From Paramoeba atlantica (Eukaryota; Protista; Discosea), in assembly GCA_977017575.1 (NCBI GenBank), contig CDRNVI010000153.1:64329-128328 (forward strand): DNA of 64,000 nucleotides, written 5' to 3'. The translations under genes were made by a program, and so were the position numbers. The notes below the pieces were generated by a model that saw nothing but the letters and a program-made list of their open reading frames with translations, was not told the DNA's origin and ran no database searches. Shown one piece after another: positions 8,655 to 21,971 of this stretch (position 1 is its first letter; each line of letters starts with the position of its first letter).

Positions 8655-9629
8655 CAAATCCGCCCAACAGCAGGAGAAAAAGACGAGTTCTTTTCCAAAA
8701 CCAAACTTTCAAATAACAGCCCACCTGTTTGGAAACAAAGGTTGGCCGCCCGGGGAGCTCTCTGGCCAAAACAGAGGGTCCAATTTGACGAAAACAATAA
8801 TGGTGACACCAAATTCTTCGAAATTTATCCTTTAAATGGAGACCCATTTAAAGAAGGGTCTCTCCAACACTTCAAATAGTGTCGACAATGTTGCGAAACG
8901 GAAAACCATTTCTCGTTTTCCGGGAAAGAAAAAAAAAGACATCGAAATTCTATTTCGAACAACTTTTGACTCAAAAAAAATTCGGAACAAAGGGGCCCAA
9001 TTTTGAAAAGCCAAAAAAGATTTTTCCAAGAATTTTCTTTTCGACAAAGACAAAGAAAGAAAAATATCAAAAAGAAAAAAGAAGGGAAACAAAGAAGAAA
9101 AAGAAGAAAAAGAAGAAAAAGAAACCTTCCGCTCGTCTGAAAAGATTTTCTCTTGTCTTTTTTTTCCCTTTCTTTTTCCCTTTTCTCTTTCCTTTTCTTT
9201 TTCCTTTTCCTTTTCCTTCTCCTTCTCATTTTCCTTTTCTTTTTCCTTCTCTTTATCTTTCATTCTCCCCATCACCATCCTTCTCTTTCTCCTTCTCCCT
9301 CTCACCAGCCCCCTTATCAAACAAAGAAGTCACAAAAATAGGATTTTTTTTCTCTTACACTTTTACCCGCTTTTTAACCTTTATCCCCAAGAAAAATGGA
9401 GGAGGGATTGATATTTTTTTGGCAGAGACATTGACATTCCTTTCCTTTTTTCCATTCAAATAAAATGAAACAAAGCAAAAAAAAGTCTTTTGGCAGACAA
9501 AAATAGGTTCAAAAAATCAAGAGCTCTAAAATTAGAACGCTTTCTTTCAATTCTTTTTCTCTCTTTCATTCTCTCCCTCATTCAATTTGCCCTTGAAACT
9601 TTGCAAAAAAGAAAAAGAAGAAAAAGAAA

Positions 9630-10450
9630 ATGGGGAATAGTCTCCAAAAAGAAAGACCAAAAAGGAGGGTTGTGGAGATTGCATTCCAAGGTCCTCGTGG
9701 AGTTGGTAAGAGTTTCCTCCTTCTTCGTTATGTCCAAGTTTTGTTTTCTTTTTCTTTTTTTTTTCTAATATTTATTTATTATATTTATTATTTTGAAGGA
9801 TTAATTTCTTTTTCTTAGAACGTTTTTGTTGTGGGATATGTTCCGCCAATTGAGGAGTAGTTTGAATTTTCTTCTCTTCTCTTTGATTTTCTTCTCTTTC
9901 TCTTTTTTCATCCTCAAGTCACAGTTACCAAAAACGAATCATTTTGTTGGCTGATGAAAAACCAGTTTTCTTTGACATGCCTGGTTTTCATTCTCTTTCT
10001 TATTTTAATCATTCATTTCAAAAAAATTAGTTTTTTAAAAGAGATATATCTTTTTTTTCAGATAGAGCAGGAGGAGAACAATTTATCTCAATGAGAGATC
10101 TGTCCATCCGAGATGCAAGAGGGCTCTTCTTTGTGTATTCAATCAATTCCTCAGAATCTTTTGACGAGATTGAAACCTTCATTCAGAGGGCGGAAAGAGT
10201 GAAAGAGCGTTCAATTGAAGGAATTGGAGTTTTGATTGGAAACAAAGTTGATCTTGAAGAAGATCGACAAGTCCCAAAATATAAAGGAGAGGAATTGGCC
10301 ACACGATATCAAATCCCTTTCTTTGAAACAAGTGCAAAGACAGGAGAGAATGTTGAAGAGATATTTCAAGCTCTTGGATCATTGGTTATTTATGGAGACC
10401 CTTTTTACCAATCTGGAGGGTGTAAAAATATTAAGTCAGCAAAGAGATGA
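9630..10450 (+). CDS. Ras-like small GTPase, copy 1
   Basis: Spliced: P-loop GPRGVGKS, switch I NVFVVGYVPPIEEY, G3 DRAGG, NKVD, ETSAK; ends GGCKNIKSAKR. Confidence 0.9.
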
Positions 10451-10979
10451 CAAATTGATTGTTTGTTTCAAAAATGTTACAAACCCTGTTCTGTTGCTTT
10501 CTGTTCAATTTGATGCCATCTTGTTGCTCCACTCCTCCGATTGATCACACCGCTCTTTCTCTCTTGCATTCCCACTCCTCTGTTTTTCCCTCATTGTTTT
10601 ATTTTCCCTTTTCCTGTTTTTCCTGATGTTTATTTTATCCTGTCCGATTTGATTTTGTCCCTGTTTCCCGATACTAAAACGCATTCAACCTTTGAAAGAG
10701 AGAGAGAGATTATTTTCGAAGAATGATATTATTTTAAATTGAGATTCAATAATTCTTATTCTGATTTCAAATAATTCAAAAATTCAATTCCCAAAACTCA
10801 AAACTCAAAAATGCAACAAAAATATGGTTCAAAAATCAAGAGCTCTAAAATTGAGGACTCTTTCTTTCTGTTTCTCTTTCGTTTCTCTCCTATCTTTCTC
10901 TTTCGTTTCTCTCTTTCATTTCCCTAAAATTGCAGTCTTGAAATTCAACTCTCCAAAAAAAGAAAAAGAAGAAAAGAAA

Positions 10980-11827
10980 ATGGGGAATGGTCTCCAAAAA
11001 GAAAGATCAAAAAAGAGGGCTGGAAAAGAAAGATCATCATCCCTGCGGATTGCATTCCAAGGTCCTGGTGGAGTTGGTAAGAGTTCCCTTGTTTGTCGTT
11101 ATGTCCAAGTTTTGTTTTTCTTTTTCTGCTTTTTCTTTTTCTTTGAAAGTATTTTGAAGGATTACTTACTTTTTCTTTTTCTCAGGGTCTTTTTGTGGAG
11201 GAATATGATCCTTTAATTGATGACTAGTTTGAATTTTTTTCTTCTCTTTAATCTTCTCTTTCTCTTTTTTCACCCTCCAGTTCATCAATCACAGTTTCCG
11301 AAAACAAATCATTTTGTTAGCTGATGAACAACCACTTCTCTTTGAAATAATTGGTTTTCATTCTCTCTTTCTTATTTTAATCATTCATTTCAAAAAAATA
11401 GTTTTTTAAAAGAGATATATCTTCTATTTTTTCAGATACAGCAGGACAAGAAGAATTTATCTCAATGAGAGATCAGATCATCCGATATGCAAGAGGATTC
11501 TTCTTTGTATATTCAATCACTTCCCCAGAATCTTTTGATGAGATTGAGACCTTCATTCAGAGGGTGGAAAGAGTGAAAGATCGTTCAATTGAAGGAATTG
11601 GAGTTTTGATTGGAAACAAAGTTGATCTTGAAGAAGAACATCGACAAGTCTCAAAAGAGAAAGGAGAGGAATTGGCCAAACGTTATGGAATCCCTTTCTT
11701 TGAAACAAGTGCAAAGACAGGAGAGAATGTTGAAGAGATGTTTCAAGCTCTTGGATCATTGATTATTTATGGAGACCCTTTTTACCAATTTGGAGGGTGT
11801 AAAAATATTAAGGCAGCAAAGAGATGA
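10980..11827 (+). CDS. Ras-like small GTPase, copy 2
   Basis: GPGGVGKS, GLFVEEYDPLIDDY, DTAGQEEF, NKVD, ETSAK; all introns GT-AG. Confidence 0.9.
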
Positions 11828-12216
11828 CAATTGATTGTTTGTTTCAAAAAAAACAAAACTAGAAAAAGTCTCTGACCAGAAAAATGAGAGAAGTTTGTAA
11901 TTTTTTTTTGGGATGGATTCAAAAATCTTTGCCATTTTTTCAACCTTTGAAAGAGAGAGATTATTTTCGAAGAATGATATTATTTTAAATTGAGATTCAA
12001 TAATTCTTATTAATAATTCAAAAATTCCCAAAACTCAAAACTAAAATTGGTTCAAAAATCAAGAGCTCTAAAATTGAGAACTCTTTCTTTCTCTCTGTTT
12101 CTCTTTCGTTTTTTTTTCTCTCTCTCTCTTTCGTTTCTCTCTTTCGTTCTCTCCCTCATTACCCTAAAATTGCAGTCTTGAAAATTCATTCCAACTCAAA
12201 AAAAGGAAGAAAGAAA

Positions 12217-13057
12217 ATGGGGAATGGTCTTCGAAAAGAAAGATCAAAAAAGAGGGATGGAAAAGAAGAAGGAAGACCATCACACCTGAAGATTGCATTC
12301 CAAGGTCCTGGTGGAGTTGGTAAGAGTTCCCTCCTTATTCGTTATGTCCAAGTTTTGTTTTCTTTTTCTTTTCTTTTTTCTTTTTTTTTTTTGAAAATAT
12401 TTTTTCTTTTTCTTAGAACCTTTTTCTGGAGGAGGAATATGATCCAACAATTGATGACTAGTTTGAATTTTCTTCTTCTTCTCTTTGATCTTCTCTTTTT
12501 TTTCATCCTCAAGTTCATCAATCACAGTTACCGAAAACAAATCATTTTGTCAGCTGATGAACAACCACTTCTATTTGACATAATTGGTTTTCATTCTCTC
12601 TTTATTTTAATCATTCATTTCAAAATATTAGTTTTTTAAAAGAGATATATCTTCTATTTTTTCAGATACAGCAGGACAAGAAGAATTTATCTCAATGAGA
12701 GATCAGATCATTCTAGATGCAAAAGGATTCTTCTTTGTGTATTCAATCACTTCCCCAGAATCTTTTGATGAGATTGAAACCTTCATTCAGAGGGTGGAAA
12801 GAGTGAAAGATCGTTCAATTGAAGGAATTGGAGTTTTGATTGGAAACAAAGTTGATCTTGAAGAAGAACATCGACAAGTCTCAAAAGATAAAGGAGAGGA
12901 ATTGGCCAAACGTTATGGAATCCCTTTCTTTGAAACAAGTGCAAAGACAGGAGAGAATGTTGAAGAGATGTTTCAAGCTCTTGGATCATTGATTATTTAT
13001 GGAGAATCTTTTTATCAATTTGGAGGGTGTAAAAATATTAAGGCAGCAAAGAGATGA
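12217..13057 (+). CDS. Ras-like small GTPase, copy 3 (the only copy with all canonical G motifs)
   Basis: GPGGVGKS, YDPTIDDY, DTAGQEEF, NKVD, ETSAK. Confidence 0.92.
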
Positions 13058-13256
13058 CAATTGTGATTGTTTGTTTCAAAAAAAACATGACAAAAAAGGA
13101 ACAAAATATTTCCTCCCCAACAAAGAGACAATTCAAAAATCAAGAGCTCTAAAAATTGAGAAACTCTTTCATTTCTCTCTTTTGTTCTCTCGCTCATTGT
13201 CCTAAAATTGCAGTCTTGAAATTCATTCCAACTCTCAAAAAAAAGGAAGAAAGAAA

Positions 13257-14123
13257 ATGGGGAATGGTCTTCGAAAAGAAAGATCAAAAAAGAGGGATGG
13301 AAAAGAAGAAGAAAGATTTTCTCGACCATCACAGATGAAGGTTGAAATGGAAGGTCCTGGTGGAGTTGGTAAGAGTTCCCTCAGTATTCGCTATGTCCAA
13401 GTTTTGTTTTCTTTTTCTTCTGTTTTTTCTTTTTTTTATTTTTTATTTTTATTTTTGAAGGATTTTTTTTCTTTTTCTTTTTCTTTTTCTCAGGGTAATT
13501 TTGTGGAGTATTATGATCCAACAATTGATGACTCGTTTGAATTTTCTTCTCTTCTCTTTGATTTTCTTCTCTTTCTCTTTTTTCATCCTCAAGTTCACCA
13601 ATCACAGTTACCGAAAACAGATCATTTTGTTGGCTGATGAACAACCAATTTTCTTTGACATAATTGGTTTTCATTCTCTCTTTTTGCTCATTCATTTCCA
13701 AAAAAAATGTTTTTTAAAAAGAGAGATTCTATTTTTTCAGATGAACCAGGACAAGAAGAATTTATCTCATTGAAAGAGCAGTTCATTCGAGATGCAAGAT
13801 GTTTCTTCTTTGTATATTCAATCGCTGCCCTACAATCTTTTGATGAGATTGAAACCTTCATTCAGAGGGTGGAAAGAATGAAAGATCGTTCAATTGAAGG
13901 AATTGGAATTTTGATTGGAAACAAAGTTGATCTTGAAGAACATCGACAAGTCCCAAAATATAAAGGAGAGGAATTGGCCACACGATATCAAATCCCTTTC
14001 TTTGAAACAAGTGCAAAGACAGGAGAGAATGTTGAAGAGATGTTTCAAGCTCTTGGATCATTGATTATTTATGGAGAACCTTTTTATCAATCCTGTAAAA
14101 ATATTAAGTCAGCAAAGAGATGA
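13257..14123 (+). CDS. Ras-like small GTPase, copy 4
   Basis: GPGGVGKS, GNFVEYYDPTIDDS, DEPGQEEF, NKVD, ETSAK. Confidence 0.9.
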
Positions 14124-14246
14124 TGACCAATTTGAATTGCTTGTTTCAAAAACAAACAAGATTGAACACAAAAGTCTCTGGCCAGAAAAAGAGAGAGAAG
14201 AGATTATTTTCGAAGAAAGTAAATTTTCTTAAAGAAGCGAAGAAAT

Positions 14247-14249
<3 letters not shown>

Positions 14250-14290
<41 letters not shown>
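14250..14290. repeat. (CT)n microsatellite in an array spacer
   Basis: Perfect dinucleotide run of ~40 nt. Confidence 0.95.
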
Positions 14291-14297
<7 letters not shown>

Positions 14298-14613
14298 AGA
14301 ATCAATCTCTTCATCAGATTTTCTCTTCCTCTCTGTCTTGATTTCATCAATCTCTCAAAAACCCCAAAAAAAACATCTTCTTTTTCAACTCCACTCTCTC
14401 TCTCTCTTCTTAAAATCCCTTGAAACAAATGGAATCAAAATGAAAAAGAAGAACAACCCCAGAGACAAAAAAAAAATAGCTGAAAAATCAAGAGCTCTTA
14501 AAAATTGCGAAGAGAGCGTTCTCTCTTTCTCTCGTTTCTTTCTCTCTCAAAAACTAAAATTACAATCTTGAAAAATTCATTCCAACACTCCAAAAAAAGA
14601 AGAAGAAAAGAAA

Positions 14614-15515
14614 ATGGGGAATGGTCTCCTAAAAGAAAGACCAAAAAAGAGGGTTGTGGAAGAAAGAAGACCAAAAAAAGAAGAAGAAGAAGAAAGATTC
14701 TTTCGACCATCACAGATGGAGATTGCATTGGATGGTTTTGGTGCAGTTGGGAAGAGTTCTCTTATTATTCGCTTTGTCCTTGTTTTGTTTTTCTTTTTCT
14801 TTTTTTCTTTTTCTTTTTTCTTTTTCTTTTTTTTGAAAAGGATTTTGAAAGAATGATTTTTCTTTTTCAGAATTGTGATTTAGTGGAGTTAGATAATTCA
14901 ATAAGAGACGATTCGTTTGAATTTTCTTCTCTTTGATTTTCTCTTTCTCTTTTTTTCAACCTCAAGTTCATCACAGTTTCCGAAAACAAATCTTTTTGTC
15001 AGCTGATGAAAAACCACTTCAATTTGAGATACCTGGTTTTTCATTTTTCTCTTTCTTCTCAATCATTCATTTCCAAAAAAAAATAGTTTTTTTAAAAAGA
15101 GATTTATTCTATTTTTTTTTCAGATCTAAGAAAACATGAATGTCCTCTCAAAGAGAGGATGCGGAAAGATTATTTGGTTCGAGATGCAAGAGGGTTCTTC
15201 TTTGTGTATTCAATCACTTCCCCAGAATCTTTTCGTGCGATTGAGCCCCTCATTCAGTGGGCGGAAAGAGTGAAAGATTGTTCAATTGAAGGAATTGGAG
15301 TTTTGATTGGAAACAAAGTTGATCTTGAAGAAGATCGACAAGTCCCAAAAGATCAAGGAGAAGAATTGGCCAAACGTTATGGAATCCCTTTCTTTGAAAC
15401 AAGTGCAAAGACAGGAGAGAATGTTGAAGAAATGTTTCAAGCTCTTGGATCATTGGTTATTTATGGAGAACCTATTTACCCATCCAGTAAAAATATTAAG
15501 TCAGCAAAGAGATGA
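14614..15515 (+). CDS. Ras-like small GTPase, copy 5 (G3 motif lost)
   Basis: GFGAVGKS, NCDLVELDNSIRDDS, DLRKHECPLKERMR, NKVD, ETSAK; frame intact. Confidence 0.87.
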
Positions 15516-15756
15516 CTGACAATTGTGATTGTTTGTTTCAAAAAAAACAAAAAAACATGACAAAAAAGAAACAAAAGATTATCCTCCCCACAACAAACAA
15601 TTCAAAAATCAAGAGCTCTAAAAATTGAGAAACTCTGCTGTTCTTTTTCGTTTCTCTCTCTCTTTCTCTTTCGCTTCTCTCTCGTTTTTCCCTTTTTGAG
15701 AACGCAAGTAGTAACAACAAACAGTGAAATTGTTTGCAATCCCCCAAGAAAAGAAA

Positions 15757-16588
15757 ATGGGGAATGGTCTCCGAAAAGAAAGAAGATCAAAAAAGAGGGT
15801 TGTGGAGATTGCATTCCAAGGTCCTCGTGGAGTTGGTAAGAGTGCCCTCGGTATTCGTTTTGCCCAAGTTTTATCTTCTTTTTCTTTTTCTTTTTCTTTT
15901 TCTTTTTCTTTTGAAAATATTTTTGAAGGATTGTTTTCTTTTCTTTTTCTTAGAACCATTTTGTGAAGGGATATGATCCATCAATTGATGACTAGTTTGA
16001 ATTTTCTTCTCTTTGATCTTCTCTTTCTCTTTTTTCATCCTCGAGTCACAGTCACCTAAAACGAGTCATTTTGTTGGCTGATGAACAACCACTTTTCTTT
16101 GAAATACCTGTTTTTTTTTCTCTCTTTCTTATTTTAATCATTCATTTCAAAAAATTAGTTTTTTAAAAGAGATTTATTCTCTTTTCTCAGATCCAAGAGA
16201 AGGACAATCTCTTGTCTTAGAGAGGATGCTGAGAGATGAGATCATTTTAGGTGCAAAAGGATTCTTCTTTGTGTATTCAATCACTTCCCCAGAATCTTTT
16301 GATGAGATTGAAACCTTCATTCAGAGGGTGGAAAGAGTGAAAGATTGTTCAATTGAAGGAATTGGAATTTTGATTGGAAACAAAGTTGATCTTGAAAAAG
16401 ATCGACAAGTCTCAAAATATAAGGGAGAGGAATTGGCCAAACGTTATCAGATTCCTTTCTTTGAAACAAGTGCAAAGACAGGAGAGAATGTTGAAGAAAT
16501 CTTTCAAACTCTTGGATCATTGATTATTTATGGAGACCCTTTTTACCAATTTGATGGGTGTAAAAATATTAAGGCAGCAAAGAGATGA
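15757..16588 (+). CDS. Ras-like small GTPase, copy 6; intron-3 donor mutated, possible pseudogene
   Basis: GPRGVGKS, NHFVKGYDPSIDDY, DPREGQ. At 16110 the sequence reads CCTG-TTTT where other copies have CCTG-GTTTT. Confidence 0.75.
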
Positions 16589-16904
16589 CAATTGTGATTG
16601 TTTTGTTTCAAAAAAAAACAAAACAACTGACAAAAAAGAAACAAAATATTTCCTCCCCACAACAAACAAAAAATATCCAAATGATCCAAAGAGACAATTC
16701 AAAAATCAAGAGCTCTAAAATCGAGGAACTCTTTCTTTTTCGAAAATTTCTGACTCGTTTCGATTGTTTGTTTTTTGTGGTTCTATCGTTTCTCTCTCGC
16801 TTCTCTCGTTTCTCTCTCGTTTCTCTCTCTCTCATTGTAAAAAACTAAAATTACAATCTTGAAAATTCATTCCACCCCTCCAAAACGAAAAAGAAGAAAA
16901 GAAA

Positions 16905-17780
16905 ATGGGGAATGGTCTCCGAAAAGAAGGAAGACCAGAAAAGAGGGTCGAAGAAGAGTTCTTTCGACCATCAGAGATGGATATTGCATTGCAAGGTTCT
17001 GATAGGGTTGGGAAGAGTGCCCTCATTGTTCGCTTTGTCCTAGTTTTGTTTTCTTTTTCTGTTTTTTTTTTTCTTTTTTTTTTTGAAAATATTTTTTGAA
17101 GGATCTTTTTCTTTTTCTTTTTTATTCAGAATTATTATTATTTAGTGGATAAAGTAAAGCTTGACGAAAAGTTTGAATTTTGTTCTTCTCTTTGATCTTT
17201 TTCTCTCTTTCTCTTTTTTCATCCTCACGTTCATCAATCACAGATACCGAAAACAAATCACTTTGTTGGCTGATGACCAACCACTTCAATTTGAGATACC
17301 AGGTTTTCATTCTCTTTCTTTCTTCTTAATCATTCATTTCCAAAAAATTATTTTTTTTTTAAAAGGGAGATTTATTCTCTTTTTTCAGATCCAAGAGAAG
17401 GAGAATCTCCTCTCTCAGCGATGATGCGGAGAGAAGAGAACATTCAAGATGCAAGAGGGCTCTTCTTTGTGTATTCAATCACTTCCTCAGCATCTTTTCA
17501 TGAGATTGAGCCCTTCATTCAGAGGGTGGAAAAAATGAAAGATTGTCCAATTGAAAAAATGGGAGTTTTAATTGGAAACAAAGCTGATCTTGAAGAACAT
17601 CGACAAGTCCCAAGAGAGAAAGGAGAGGAATTGGCCAAACGTTATGGGATCCCTTTCTTTGAAACAAGTGCAAAGACAGGAGAGAATGTTGAAGAGATGT
17701 TTCAAGCTCTTGGATCATTGGTTATTTATGGAGAACCTATTTACCAATCCTGTAAAAATATTAAGTCAGCAAAGAGATGA
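16905..17780 (+). CDS. Ras-like small GTPase, copy 7
   Basis: GSDRVGKS, NYYYLVDKVKLDEK, DPREGE, NKAD, ETSAK; frame intact. Confidence 0.87.
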
Positions 17781-18362
17781 CTGACAATTGATTATTTGTT
17801 TTTTTATTGGATCGTGGGTTCAAAAATCTTTGCCATTTTCAAATCGATGTTTCTCAGAACCCTTTCATGAAAGAAGGTTTTTTTTTTGAAGAGTGTTTTT
17901 ATTTAAATTAAACTTCAATAATAATTATTATTCCGATTTGAAAAAATTCAACGTTCTGATGCCCATCAAAATGAGAATTCTCCCCTTGAAAAAATCAACA
18001 CAAAAAGACCATTTTTGACCAATTTTTTGTCAAACTTTCCGGTTTCTCTCTTTCTTTTTCGTTTCTCTCTTCTCGCTCATTGGCCCAAAATTACGCTGTG
18101 TTAAATATTTGGTGACCAAAAACCATTTTCGGTGAATCCTTTTCTTTGTTCTTGCGAAATTAATCTCATTCTTTCTTTTCCCGAATTTCATTTCCCTTTA
18201 TTCCCTTTTCCTTTGTTGTAGAGTACTTTTGGAGCCCTGTCTTCAGCCATTCCCACGTTTTCCTAGAGAAGGCTAGTTCTTCATTGTTCGTGCCATCCTG
18301 TGAATTTTACACAGTCTTGAAATCCATTCCAACTCTCCAAAAAAAAAAGAAAGAAGAAGAAA

Positions 18363-19204
18363 ATGGGGAATGGCCTTCAAAAAGAAAGAAAAAAAAAGAG
18401 GGTTGGGGAAGAAGAAAGACCATTAATTTACCTGAATATTACATTCCAAGGTCCTGGTGGAGTTGGGAAGAGTTCCCTTGCTCTTCGCTATTTCCAAGTT
18501 TTGTTTTCTTTTTCTTTTTCTTTTTGAAAATATTTTTGAAGGATTATTTTCTTTTTCTTTTTCTCTTCAGAATCTTTTCGTGGATCAGTATGATCCAACA
18601 ACTGATAACTAGTTTGAATTTTCTTGTTCTCTTTGATCTTCTCTTTCTCTTCTTTCATCCTCAAGTTCATTAATCAAAGTTTCCGAAAACACACCATTTT
18701 GTTGGCTGATGAAAAACTAATTTTCTTTGAAATACTTGGTTTTCATTCTCTCTTTCTTATTGTAATCATTCATTTCAAAAAAAATTAGTTTTTTAAAAGA
18801 GAGATTCTATTTTTTCAGATAAAGCAGGAGGAGAAAAATTTATGGCATCGAGAGATCGGAACATTCAAAACGCAAGAGGATTCTTCTTTTTTTATTCAAT
18901 CACTTCCTCACAATCTTTTGATGAGATTGAAACCTTCATTCAGAGGATGGAAAGAGTGAAAGATCGTTCAATTGAAGGAATTGGAGTTTTGATTGGAAAC
19001 AAAGTTGATCTTGAAGAAGAACATCGACAAGTCCCAAAATATAAGGGAGAGGAATTGGCCAAACATTATGGAATCCCTTTCTTTGAAACAAGTGCAAAGA
19101 CAGGAGAGAATGTTGAAGAGATGTTTCAAGCTCTTGGATCATTGGTTCTTTATGGAGAACCTTTTTATCGATCCGGTAAAAATATTAAGTCAGCAAAGAT
19201 ATGA
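18363..19204 (+). CDS. Ras-like small GTPase, copy 8
   Basis: MGNGLQKERKKKR..., GPGGVGKS, NLFVDQYDPTTDNY, DKAGGEKF, NKVD, ETSAK. The intron-2 acceptor is AAG rather than CAG. Confidence 0.87.
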
Positions 19205-19557
19205 CAATTGTGATTGTTTGTTTCAAAAAAAACAAAAAAACATGACAAAAAAGTTGTTTCAATCTGCCTTTGCCAATTTTTTTCAATCTTTGAAAGAAGA
19301 GATTATTTTCAAAGAATGATATTATTTTAAATTGAGATTCAATAATTCTTATGAATAATTCAAAAACTCAAAACTCAAAAATGCAACAAAAATATGGTTC
19401 AAAAATCAAGAGCTCTAAAATTGAGAACTCTTTCTTTCTGTTTCTCTTTCGTTTTTTTCTCTCTCTCTTTCTCTTTCGTTTCTCTCTTTCATTCTCTCGC
19501 TCATTGCCCTAAAATTACAGTCTTAAAAATTCAATCCAAAAAAACAGAAGAAAGAAA

Positions 19558-20464
19558 ATGGGGAATGGTCTTCGAAAAGAAAGAAGATCAAAAAAGAGGG
19601 TTGGAGAAGAAGAAGAAGAAGAAGAAAGATTCTCTCGACCATCACAGCTGAAGATTGGAATGGAAGGTTCTTATAAAGTTGGTAAGACCGCCCTCATTTC
19701 TCGCTTTGGCTCAGTTTTGTTTTTTCTTTTTCTTCTGTTTTTTCTTTCTCTTTTTCTTTTCAAATATTTATTGAAGGATTATTTTCATTTTTCTTTTTTC
19801 TTTTCCTTTTCTCAGGGTTATTTTGTGGAGGAATCTGATCTATCAGTTCAGGACAGGTTTGAATTTTCTTCTTCTCCTCTTTGATCTTCTCTTTCTCTTT
19901 TTTCATCCTCAAGTTCATCAATCACAGTAACAAATTCCAAATCATTTTGTTGGCTGATGAACAGCCAATTGAATATGATCTAATTGGTTTTCATTTTCTC
20001 TTTCTTATTTTAATCATTCATTTCAAAAAATTAGTTTTTTAAAAGAGATTTATTCTCTTTTCTCAGATCCAAGAGAAGGAGAATCTCTTGTCTTTGAGAT
20101 GATTCTGAGAGATGAGATCATTCTAGATACAAGATGTTTCTTCTTTGTGTATTCAATCACTTCCTCACAATCTTTTGATGAGATTGAAACCTTCATTCAG
20201 AGGGTGGAAAGAGTGAAAGATCGTTCAATTGAAGGAATTGGAGTTTTGATTGGAAACAAAGTTGATCTTGAAGCAGATCGACAAGTCTCAAAATATAAAG
20301 GAGAGGAATTGGCCAAACGTTATCAGATCCCTTTCTTTGAAACAAGTGCAAAGACAGGAGAGAATGTTGAAGAGATGTTTCAAACTCTTGGATCATTGAT
20401 TATTTATGGAGAACCTTTTTACCAATCTGGAGGGTGTAAAAATATTAAGGCAGCAAAGAGATGA
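19558..20464 (+). CDS. Ras-like small GTPase, copy 9
   Basis: GSYKVGKT, GYFVEESDLSVQDS, DPREGE, NKVD, ETSAK. Confidence 0.87.
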
Positions 20465-21109
20465 CTGACAATTGATTGTTCAAAAAAAACCAACTGACTA
20501 AAAAGAAACAAAATGCTCCCACAACAAACTCCCCTAAACCATCCTCAACTTTTTCTCCAACAAAAAACCCTCCTTCAAAAACTGTAAACCCTCGATTTCT
20601 TCAGGTATCAAATCTCTTCCTCCTTTCTCTCTCTCTCAGAAAAACCTTCCTCTTACAAGCTCCTTCTTCTTCTTCTTCTTCCCCACTCTCCCACATCTTT
20701 CTTCAAATGACAAAAGGAAAATAGAACAGTTCTCGATCCTTGTCGAGCCTTCTTCCATTTCATTTCTTCTATTCCATTTCTTCCATTCCATTTCTTCCAT
20801 TCCAAGAATATCTCAGGTGTCTTTCAACAGATGATGCCACAGATTTTGTTTCTTTCTCTCTCTCTTTTCTTAAAACCCCCTTGGAACAAATGGAATAAAA
20901 TTATGAAAAACAAATGACAAAAATTGGTTTCAAAAATCAAGAGCTCTAAAAATTTTATTGCAAAGAGGGGTTCTCTCTTTTCTCTCGTTTCTCTCTCGTT
21001 TCTCTCTCATTGTAAAAACTAAAATTACTCTCTCTTTTCTCTCTCATTGTCCTAAAATTGCAGTCTTGAAAATTCATTCCAACTCTCTAATAGAAAAGGA
21101 GAAAAGAAA

Positions 21110-21971
21110 ATGGGGAATGGTCTCCAAAAAAGAGAAGAAAAGGAAGAAGAAGAAAGATTCTTTCGACCATCACAGATGGCGATTGCATTGGAAGGTTCTG
21201 ATAAAGTTGGGAAGAGTTCCCTCCTTTCTCGCTTTGTCCTAGTTTTGTTTCTTTTCTTTTTTCTTTTTCTCTTTTTTTTTTTGGAAAGTATTTTGAAGAA
21301 TTATTTTCTTTTTCTTTTTCTTTTTCTCAGAATTATTTAGTGGATGAAGAGGATCGAGCAATTGGCGAAAAGTTTGAATTTTGTTCTTCTCTTTAATCTT
21401 CTCTTTCTCTTTTTTCATTCTCAAGTTCAGCAATCACAGTTACCGAAAACGAATCATTTTGTCAGCTGATGAACAACCACTTCTATTTGAGATACCTGGT
21501 TTTCCTTCTCTCTTTCTTATCAATCATTCATTTCAAAAAAAAATAATTTTTTAAAAGAGAGATATTCTATTTTTTTCAGATACAGAAGGAGAAGGCTTTT
21601 TAGTCTTAGAGATGATGCGGAGAAAAGAGATCAATGAAGATGCAAGAGGATTCTTCTTTGTTTTTTCAATCACTTCCCAAGAATCTTTTGATGAGATCGA
21701 ACCCACCATTCAAATGATAAAAGGTATGAAAGAGCACCCAATTGAAAGAATTGGAATTTTGATTGGAAACAAAGTTGATCTTGAAGACGATCGACAAGTC
21801 TCAAAAGAGAAAGGAGAGGAATTGGCCAAACGTTATGGGATCCCTTTCTTTGAAACAAGTGCAAAGACAGGAGAGAATGTTGAAGAGATGTTTCAAGCTC
21901 TTGGATCATTGGTTATTTATGGAGACCCTTTTTACCGATCCTGTAAAAATATTAAGTCAGCAAAGAGATGA
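21110..21971 (+). CDS. Ras-like small GTPase, copy 10
   Basis: GSDKVGKS, NYLVDEEDRAIGEN, DTEGEG, NKVD, ETSAK. Confidence 0.87.

Follow-up and report, generated by a model that had tools for sequence, protein, structure and literature searches.

What keeps a set of neighbouring Ras genes nearly identical in their introns and in the second half of their proteins, and very different at the surface through which Ras meets its partners? The question is raised by ten tandem Ras-family genes at positions 9630-21971 of the window analysed here, a stretch of 64,000 nucleotides from the amoeba Paramoeba atlantica (G000:C153:64329-128328 in the 45.7-Mb, 248-contig assembly that was searched). In classical Ras the effector lobe is the most conserved part of the protein. 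Our reading of the array, to which we give a probability of about 0.6, is that it consists of ten protein-coding paralogues whose scaffold is homogenised, whose effector lobe is kept different from copy to copy and whose switch II is positively selected.

The ten genes (g1 to g10) stand head-to-tail on the + strand and have four exons each. The units can be aligned end to end, and every one of them starts with ATGGGGAAT (at 9630, 10980, 12217, 13257, 14614, 15757, 16905, 18363, 19558 and 21110). Splicing at common GT..AG sites, with the exception of a single junction, gives ten open frames of 198-220 amino acids that share three intron positions. Exon 2 measures 41 nucleotides (nt) except in g3 and g5, where it has 44 nt, and exon 3 is 59 nt long throughout. 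By alignment to canonical Ras, exon 2 corresponds to residues 26-40 (the end of alpha-1 plus switch I), exon 3 encodes beta2-beta3, and the first residue of exon 4 is D57. Family membership is evident from matches of exon 4 to the Pfam Ras family PF00071 (E 8.8e-32 for g2 and 1.8e-24 for g5) and from a PDB sequence search, in which Ras, HRas, KRas and NRas chains came closest (best E 1.7e-27). A first-pass annotation, made from the letters of this DNA alone, had described ten tandem Ras-like genes with coding indels in multiples of three and no stops; this was borne out in all ten copies, and each of its ten switch-I peptides and ten switch-II pentapeptides was reproduced exactly after splicing. 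The genes are as follows.

9630..10450, + strand: g1, Ras-like, 198 amino acids; exons 9630-9737, 9819-9859, 9925-9983, 10062-10450; P-loop GPRGVGKS (G12R), switch I VPPIEE (no T35), switch II DRAGG (Q61G)
10980..11827, + strand: g2, Ras-like, near-canonical, 206 amino acids; exons 10980-11108, 11186-11226, 11295-11353, 11436-11827; GPGGVGKS, YDPLIDD (T35L), DTAGQ
12217..13057, + strand: g3, Ras-like, 209 amino acids; exons 12217-12351, 12417-12460 (44 nt), 12528-12586, 12666-13057; GPGGVGKS, YDPTIDD, DTAGQ, NKVD and ETSAK, the sole copy with every canonical G motif
13257..14123, + strand: g4, Ras-like, 208 amino acids; exons 13257-13400, 13494-13534, 13608-13666, 13741-14123; GPGGVGKS, YDPTIDD, DEPGQ
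14614..15515, + strand: g5, Ras-like, strongly derived, 220 amino acids; exons 14614-14781, 14871-14914 (44 nt), 14977-15035, 15124-15515; GFGAVGKS, LDNSIRDD, DLRKH with a 3-residue insertion in switch II
15757..16588, + strand: g6, Ras-like, chimeric, 202 amino acids if spliced as the other copies; exons 15757-15867, 15954-15994, 16052-16110, 16191-16588; GPRGVGKS, YDPSIDD, DPREG
16905..17780, + strand: g7, Ras-like, strongly derived, 209 amino acids; exons 16905-17042, 17130-17170, 17244-17302, 17389-17780; GSDRVGKS, switch I NYYYLVDKVKLDEK, DPREG, NKAD
18363..19204, + strand: g8, Ras-like, 206 amino acids; exons 18363-18497, 18571-18611, 18680-18738, 18819-19204; GPGGVGKS, YDPTTDN, DKAGG
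19558..20464, + strand: g9, Ras-like, 217 amino acids; exons 19558-19713, 19816-19856, 19928-19986, 20067-20464; GSYKVGKT, SDLSVQD, DPREG
21110..21971, + strand: g10, Ras-like, 207 amino acids; exons 21110-21241, 21331-21371, 21440-21498, 21580-21971; GSDKVGKS, EDRAIGE, DTEGE

Towards the 3' end of exon 1 a short peptide, ERF(F/S)RPS(Q/E)(M/L), recurs in g4, g5, g7, g9 and g10 (e.g. 13320-13345), inside an N-terminal extension that otherwise varies between copies.

The uneven spread of variation along the gene is seen in the mean pairwise p-distance among the ten copies, taken segment by segment.

Exon 1: 0.180
Intron 1 (T-rich, low complexity): 0.225
Exon 2 (switch I): 0.355
Intron 2: 0.067
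Exon 3: 0.187
Intron 3: 0.127
Exon 4, first ~75 nt (switch II): 0.275
Exon 4, remainder: 0.078

The switch-I exon and the beginning of exon 4 are thus more diverged than introns 2 and 3. The flanking introns had been called almost unchanged, which holds for intron 2 (93% identical) and roughly for intron 3 (87%), but not for the low-complexity intron 1 (77%). In g4 a T-rich part of intron 1 lies at 13404-13470. A gap-lenient pairwise aligner was dropped after it returned near-random values on the T-rich introns; with the stricter gap scoring used instead, and with shuffled controls, introns 2 and 3 came out at 0.85 identity within the array and exon 2 at 0.64, the shuffled level being ~0.5. 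The ordinary pattern is found in a four-copy sister array on contig C158, in which introns (0.25-0.30) exceed any exon segment (0.11-0.24). At the protein level, mean column entropy was 1.12 over Ras residues 4-86 and 0.35 over residues 87-166 (Mann-Whitney p 9e-12). Hypervariable columns fall at positions 11-13, 20-21, 27-40, 52, 58-67 and 70-74, so that the hypervariability first noticed in the switches also takes in P-loop residues 11-13 and alpha-1, i.e. the whole effector lobe. Invariant columns comprise G10, V14, G15, K16, S/T17, D57, N116, K117, D119 and S145-A146-K147.

Selection was assessed region by region through the ratio of replacement to silent divergence (dN/dS, omega), both by Nei-Gojobori (NG86) counting and by maximum likelihood (ML) under the Goldman-Yang (GY) model.

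N-terminal extension: NG86 dN 0.18, dS 0.21; ML omega 0.96
P-loop and alpha-1: NG86 dN 0.28, dS 0.17; ML omega 1.30
Switch I: NG86 dN 0.54, dS 0.55; ML omega 0.79
Beta2-beta3: NG86 dN 0.23, dS 0.18; ML omega 2.0
Switch II and alpha-2: NG86 dN 0.485, dS 0.175; ML omega 9.7
Remainder of the protein: NG86 dN 0.087, dS 0.092; ML omega 0.98

Only for switch II was omega = 1 rejected (2*dlnL 18.8, p ~1.5e-5), with a counting estimate of 2.8 (bootstrap range 1.6-6.0). The signal is not an artefact of a 9-nt indel in this segment, since omega stays at 2.9 and 4.9 when the two indel classes are taken one by one. Switch II is under positive selection. Switch I has a different history. Where the paired codons of two copies specify one and the same amino acid, silent sites differ by 0.556 in exon 2, by 0.091 in switch II, by 0.11-0.18 in exons 1 and 3 and by 0.074 in the rest; because its silent sites carry an equally large excess, exon 2 fits a set of old cassettes that have escaped gene conversion rather than a recent burst of amino-acid change.

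The nearest neighbour of a copy differs from segment to segment. Approximately unbiased (AU) tests rejected a common tree for exons 1 and 2, the first part of exon 4 (4a) and its remainder (4b), with p from 1e-6 to 0.005; because the segment trees conflict significantly, we conclude that the copies recombine or convert. A clear chimera is g6, whose 5' half is closest to g1/g3 and whose switch II is closest to g9. The spacers between genes are partly alignable and ~80% identical where aligned, which makes them more diverged than introns 2 and 3 and the 3' part of exon 4 (they were compared by local alignment, as 150/200-nt global intergenic alignments were judged unreliable).

A further comparison comes from the closest paralogue outside the array, L036:9784-10579 (ENA ctg3889l; protein P0008), which has the same four-exon structure. 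Exon 2 is hardly more alike within the array (64%) than between the array and L036 (62%), while exon 4b reaches 91% within the array against 79% to L036, and intron 3 reaches 85% against 59%. Because the introns of L036 have diverged to 59-67% identity with those of the array (the random level is ~50%), introns are not intrinsically constrained. Together with the diverged spacers and the conflicting segment trees, this makes homogenised gene bodies the best explanation for the near-identity of introns within the array.

In L036, switch I is near-canonical (DEYDPPIED) and switch II fully non-canonical (DSVEEDY...); the gene was not among the matches listed in the search of assembly G000. A tree built from the C-terminal half groups the array in one clade (support 84/89), to which L036 is sister, and the two are nested in an 18-member clade of the same genome (support 95/93). 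This larger clade also contains the C158 array and singletons on contigs C160, C156 and C164, several of them likewise with a non-canonical switch II. The C158 array (L032:2265-6220, equal to G000:C158:129764-133719) consists of four tandem Ras genes from this subfamily, each with three exons, that lack an intron before switch I and retain canonical YDPTIE and DTAGQ; two of its copies, h1 and h2, extend ~45 amino acids beyond the usual C-terminus. Outside the organism's own assembly, the best matches to exon 4 were generic Ras proteins at no more than 58% identity. Only two proteins, P0029 and P0121 of the MMETSP0161 transcriptome, share the termini of the subfamily (Met-Gly and a basic N-terminus, N(I/V)KRA(R/V) at the C-terminus), and they carry DPAGG and DTAGY in switch II. 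As these proteins are transcriptome-derived, it follows that another species transcribes non-canonical subfamily members. The C-terminal tail of the array occurs in looser form in the paralogues and in the MMETSP0161 proteins. The array belongs to a Ras subfamily, so far seen in this amoeba lineage only, that has Met-Gly and a basic N-terminus, a conserved KNIK(A/S)AKR tail at the C-terminus and no CAAX box.

What the variable lobe does to the GTPase cycle can be predicted from the motifs. The G1 P-loop GxxxxGK[ST] is intact in all ten copies, with variation at positions 11-13. The T35 position is occupied by Thr in g3, g4 and g8 only, by Ser in g5, g6 and g9, and by P, L, K and A in g1, g2, g7 and g10. 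Within G3 (DxxGQ), D57 is universal, G60 is present in six copies and Q61 in three (g2, g3 and g4). G4 reads NKVD in nine copies and NKAD in g7, and G5 is ETSAK in all. Every copy begins with MGN, ends in KNIK(A/S)AK(R/I) and lacks a C-terminal CAAX box. In established Ras biochemistry, replacements at G12/G13, T35 and Q61 abolish hydrolysis, both intrinsic and stimulated by GTPase-activating proteins, as well as normal switch movement, and GK[ST], D57, NKxD and SAK suffice for nucleotide binding. Judged by sequence alone, g1 and g5-g10 have G12/G13 and/or Q61 replaced and the base- and phosphate-binding residues kept. Because G12/G13, T35 and/or Q61 are lost and the binding motifs are kept, the derived copies read as nucleotide-bound and non-hydrolysing; most copies of the array probably bind nucleotide without hydrolysing GTP. 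A partner-binding face that differs greatly from copy to copy, in genes that are otherwise alike, introns included, suggests that these proteins have been selected for binding to different partners.

In the account that we propose, the array evolves in two modes side by side. Gene conversion or unequal crossing-over keeps the scaffold alike, that is introns 2 and 3, beta2-beta3 and the region from beta4 to the C-terminus with its NKxD and SAK motifs. Differences between copies are kept up in the effector lobe, at P-loop positions 11-13, in alpha-1, in switch I and in switch II/alpha-2. In switch II, recent replacement substitutions outpace silent changes, and the 41-nt switch-I exon persists as old, deeply diverged cassettes that conversion has not erased. 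Recombination also reshuffles such modules between copies, as in g6 with its g1/g3-type 5' half and g9-type switch II. On this model g3, and perhaps g2, may still cycle as GTPases, and the other copies would be membrane-located, hydrolysis-dead and probably permanently loaded Ras-like adaptors with distinct binding faces.

Such a mosaic might be suspected of being an assembly artefact, or a cluster of dead pseudogenes, and we consider both highly improbable. The array is carried, in the same order and with the same content, by two overlapping long-read-style contigs of ENA assembly ERZ24900291, of which ctg3841l matches g4-g10 at 100% identity and ctg2844l matches g1-g5 at 99.7%; with two contigs in agreement, assembly collapse is not an obvious explanation. 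The 0.3% by which ctg2844l departs is a point in favour of an artefact: against window positions 12291-14094 it has 26 mismatches and 10 gaps, including single-base insertions in exon 4 of g3 and g4, which stem either from errors at a contig end or from a second haplotype in which copies are broken. We rejected these differences as a record of allelic variation, since single-base indels inside exons look like contig-end errors. The non-canonical splice donor of g6, described below, points the same way. Yet the copies are too different from one another to be one mis-assembled gene, and sequencing runs from three samples of one study contain 53-82% of the sampled words. As for pseudogenes, all ten frames are open, and selection has kept the coding capacity of the array. 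At least 353 substitution events (a minimum per alignment column) have produced no stop codon where ~18 would be expected, given that a stop would arise from ~5% of random changes to such codons (P ~1e-8); ~7 of the expected stops would fall in the two switch segments alone, which have none. Exon lengths differ between copies by multiples of three alone, and intron lengths vary freely.

Another alternative is relaxed constraint combined with heterology-limited gene conversion. Redundant copies that had lost GTPase function would drift in their switches, conversion would homogenise the parts that are still similar and halt at diverged patches, and a mosaic would result without any selection for diversity. 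Several results weigh against our reading, and a number of them are what such drift would leave. Strong diversifying selection had been proposed for the interaction surface as a whole; the codon tests uphold it for switch II (omega 2.8 by counting, 9.7 by ML) but not for switch I, where an omega of 0.8-1.0 is by itself compatible with neutral drift. For the N-terminal extension and the conserved C-terminal half, too, omega is close to 1 and not below it, and ordinary purifying selection is thus not visible in either. The codon tests use one tree per region, and recombination within a region could inflate omega. No RNA run that contains this stretch, and would speak for its expression and splicing, was found among the sequencing runs searched. 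The intron-3 donor of g6, at 16111, reads TTTTTT instead of GT (within 16105-16125, CCTG is followed by nine T, in the other copies by GTTTTC), and splicing at the nearest alternative GT would put the reading frame out of step. Possible explanations are a homopolymer error, a splice of non-canonical type and recent disablement of this copy. A Ser at position 6 after Met-Gly favours N-myristoylation; the paralogues have it, and the array copies have Gln, Arg or Leu, for which reason their lipidation is less certain. The loss of catalytic residues in most copies, the clear recombination or conversion and the spacers that are more diverged than introns 2 and 3 also accord with drift. Drift cannot, however, yield a dN that is 3-10 times dS in switch II, within indel classes as well as overall. 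Nor does it sit well with the missing stops and the strictly in-frame indels, with structural and nucleotide-binding residues that are invariant inside the variable half, or with an upstream motif retained in nine of the ten copies (see below). We therefore regard drift alone as unlikely. If the variation is selected, its target might be a pathogen: as immune-type decoys or sensors, the derived copies would mimic the Ras switch surface and trap or detect the effectors or toxins with which intracellular bacteria, or viruses, target Ras-family switches. A role in self/non-self recognition, which the first-pass annotation also put forward, is likewise conjectural. A tandem array with positive selection on the very surface that known toxins attack is in keeping with this idea, and there is a precedent in Irgb2-b1 (PMC3810784, PMC6420625), but diversified endogenous signalling or interaction with an endosymbiont would leave the same sequence signature, and we find the proposal quite doubtful. 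A decidedly long shot is its more specific form, in which a recombination-shuffled germline repertoire of hydrolysis-dead Ras baits would act as an innate recognition or decoy system against effectors of microbes or viruses, or factors of an endosymbiont, that are aimed at Ras switches, with g3 as the guarded signalling protein.

The reading that we prefer, of maintained paralogues with a homogenised scaffold and a diversified effector lobe, can be set beside known systems. Classical Ras proteins (H/K/N-Ras and the Dictyostelium RasD/RasG type; PF00071) belong by sequence to the same fold family. Unlike them, the array genes lack the CAAX box and have Met-Gly, a basic N-terminus and the KNIK(A/S)AK(R/I) tail, and the pattern of conservation is inverted, with a variable effector lobe and a nearly invariant allosteric lobe. 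Non-canonical or constitutively loaded small GTPases and pseudoGTPases have been reviewed (PMC13236570), and pseudoGTPase domains are described in p190RhoGAP (PMC5593906). The array resembles these in its replacements at the equivalents of Ras G12, G13, T35 and Q61 with the P-loop lysine and NKxD/SAK kept. Those, however, are single conserved genes, whereas the array, known so far from its DNA, is a tandem set of ten differing variants that includes a canonical copy and shows positive selection.

Two immune systems of animals offer further parallels. Irgb2-b1, a polymorphic tandem IRG protein of wild mice, binds Toxoplasma ROP5 (PMC3810784, PMC6420625). Like it, the array consists of tandem-duplicated GTPase genes with a diversified interaction surface, and the analogy, with the surface as bait, would be one of working principle; Irgb2-b1 belongs to the IRG family (~47 kDa), is vertebrate and interferon-inducible, varies as a population polymorphism and has a known pathogen ligand. 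Positive selection on a surface of tandem paralogues, the logic of IRG proteins, is seen in the array at switch II and not, as measured by omega, at switch I. Switch I is itself a point of attack in Ras, since the RRSP domain of the Vibrio MARTX toxin cuts Ras and Rap1 within it (PMC4468845). MHC (major histocompatibility complex) families combine concerted evolution with retained exon diversity (PMC12674619, PMC3434948). As in these, the introns and framework of the array are homogenised, a short exon for the binding surface is deeply diverged at silent and replacement sites alike, and the paralogues are mosaics; the features expected of MHC-like dynamics (introns more alike than the exon, high silent divergence of the exon, recombination between copies) were all found. 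The array protein is unrelated to MHC, and its diversity is that among paralogues in a single haploid assembly and not a diversity of alleles. Full-text literature searches brought up no account of hypervariable switches in a Ras-family array, and in the Paramoeba genome paper (PMC5601477) a text search for "Ras" gave a count of zero.

The copies also share sequence upstream of their start codons. An 18-nt motif forms the core of a conserved block of ~85 nt located 114-200 nt before the ATG. It has nine matches in the window, where 0.36 would be expected, and in a whole-genome search it was limited to the array and one orphan copy. The sole gene without it is g8.

9516..9533, + strand: upstream (promoter-like) motif of g1
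10835..10852, + strand: upstream motif of g2
12058..12075, + strand: upstream motif of g3
13139..13156, + strand: upstream motif of g4, 1 mismatch
14487..14504, + strand: upstream motif of g5, 3 mismatches
15608..15625, + strand: upstream motif of g6, 1 mismatch
16705..16722, + strand: upstream motif of g7, 1 mismatch
19405..19422, + strand: upstream motif of g9
20936..20953, + strand: upstream motif of g10, 1 mismatch

The orphan ~85-nt element (L037:794-876, equal to G000:C153:62093-62175) lies ~2.2 kb before the start of the window; it is 94% identical to that of g2 and has no Ras coding sequence downstream. An AMP-binding/FAAL-like gene stands between it and the array. According to the contig gene calls, an open frame with a reverse-transcriptase domain (RVT_1; window ~1970-2761, - strand; L030:504-1295) adjoins the AMP-binding/Hexapep gene upstream of the array.

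Switches I and II are the textbook example of a surface that cannot be moved, and in this array no other part of the gene varies as much; they are set in a scaffold that concerted evolution keeps uniform. The array is a compact case of MHC-like dynamics outside the immunity genes of animals. If the derived copies are expressed, they would be an experiment of nature in which the Ras effector lobe is given new targets, and a candidate recognition repertoire of a protist, built on a small GTPase.

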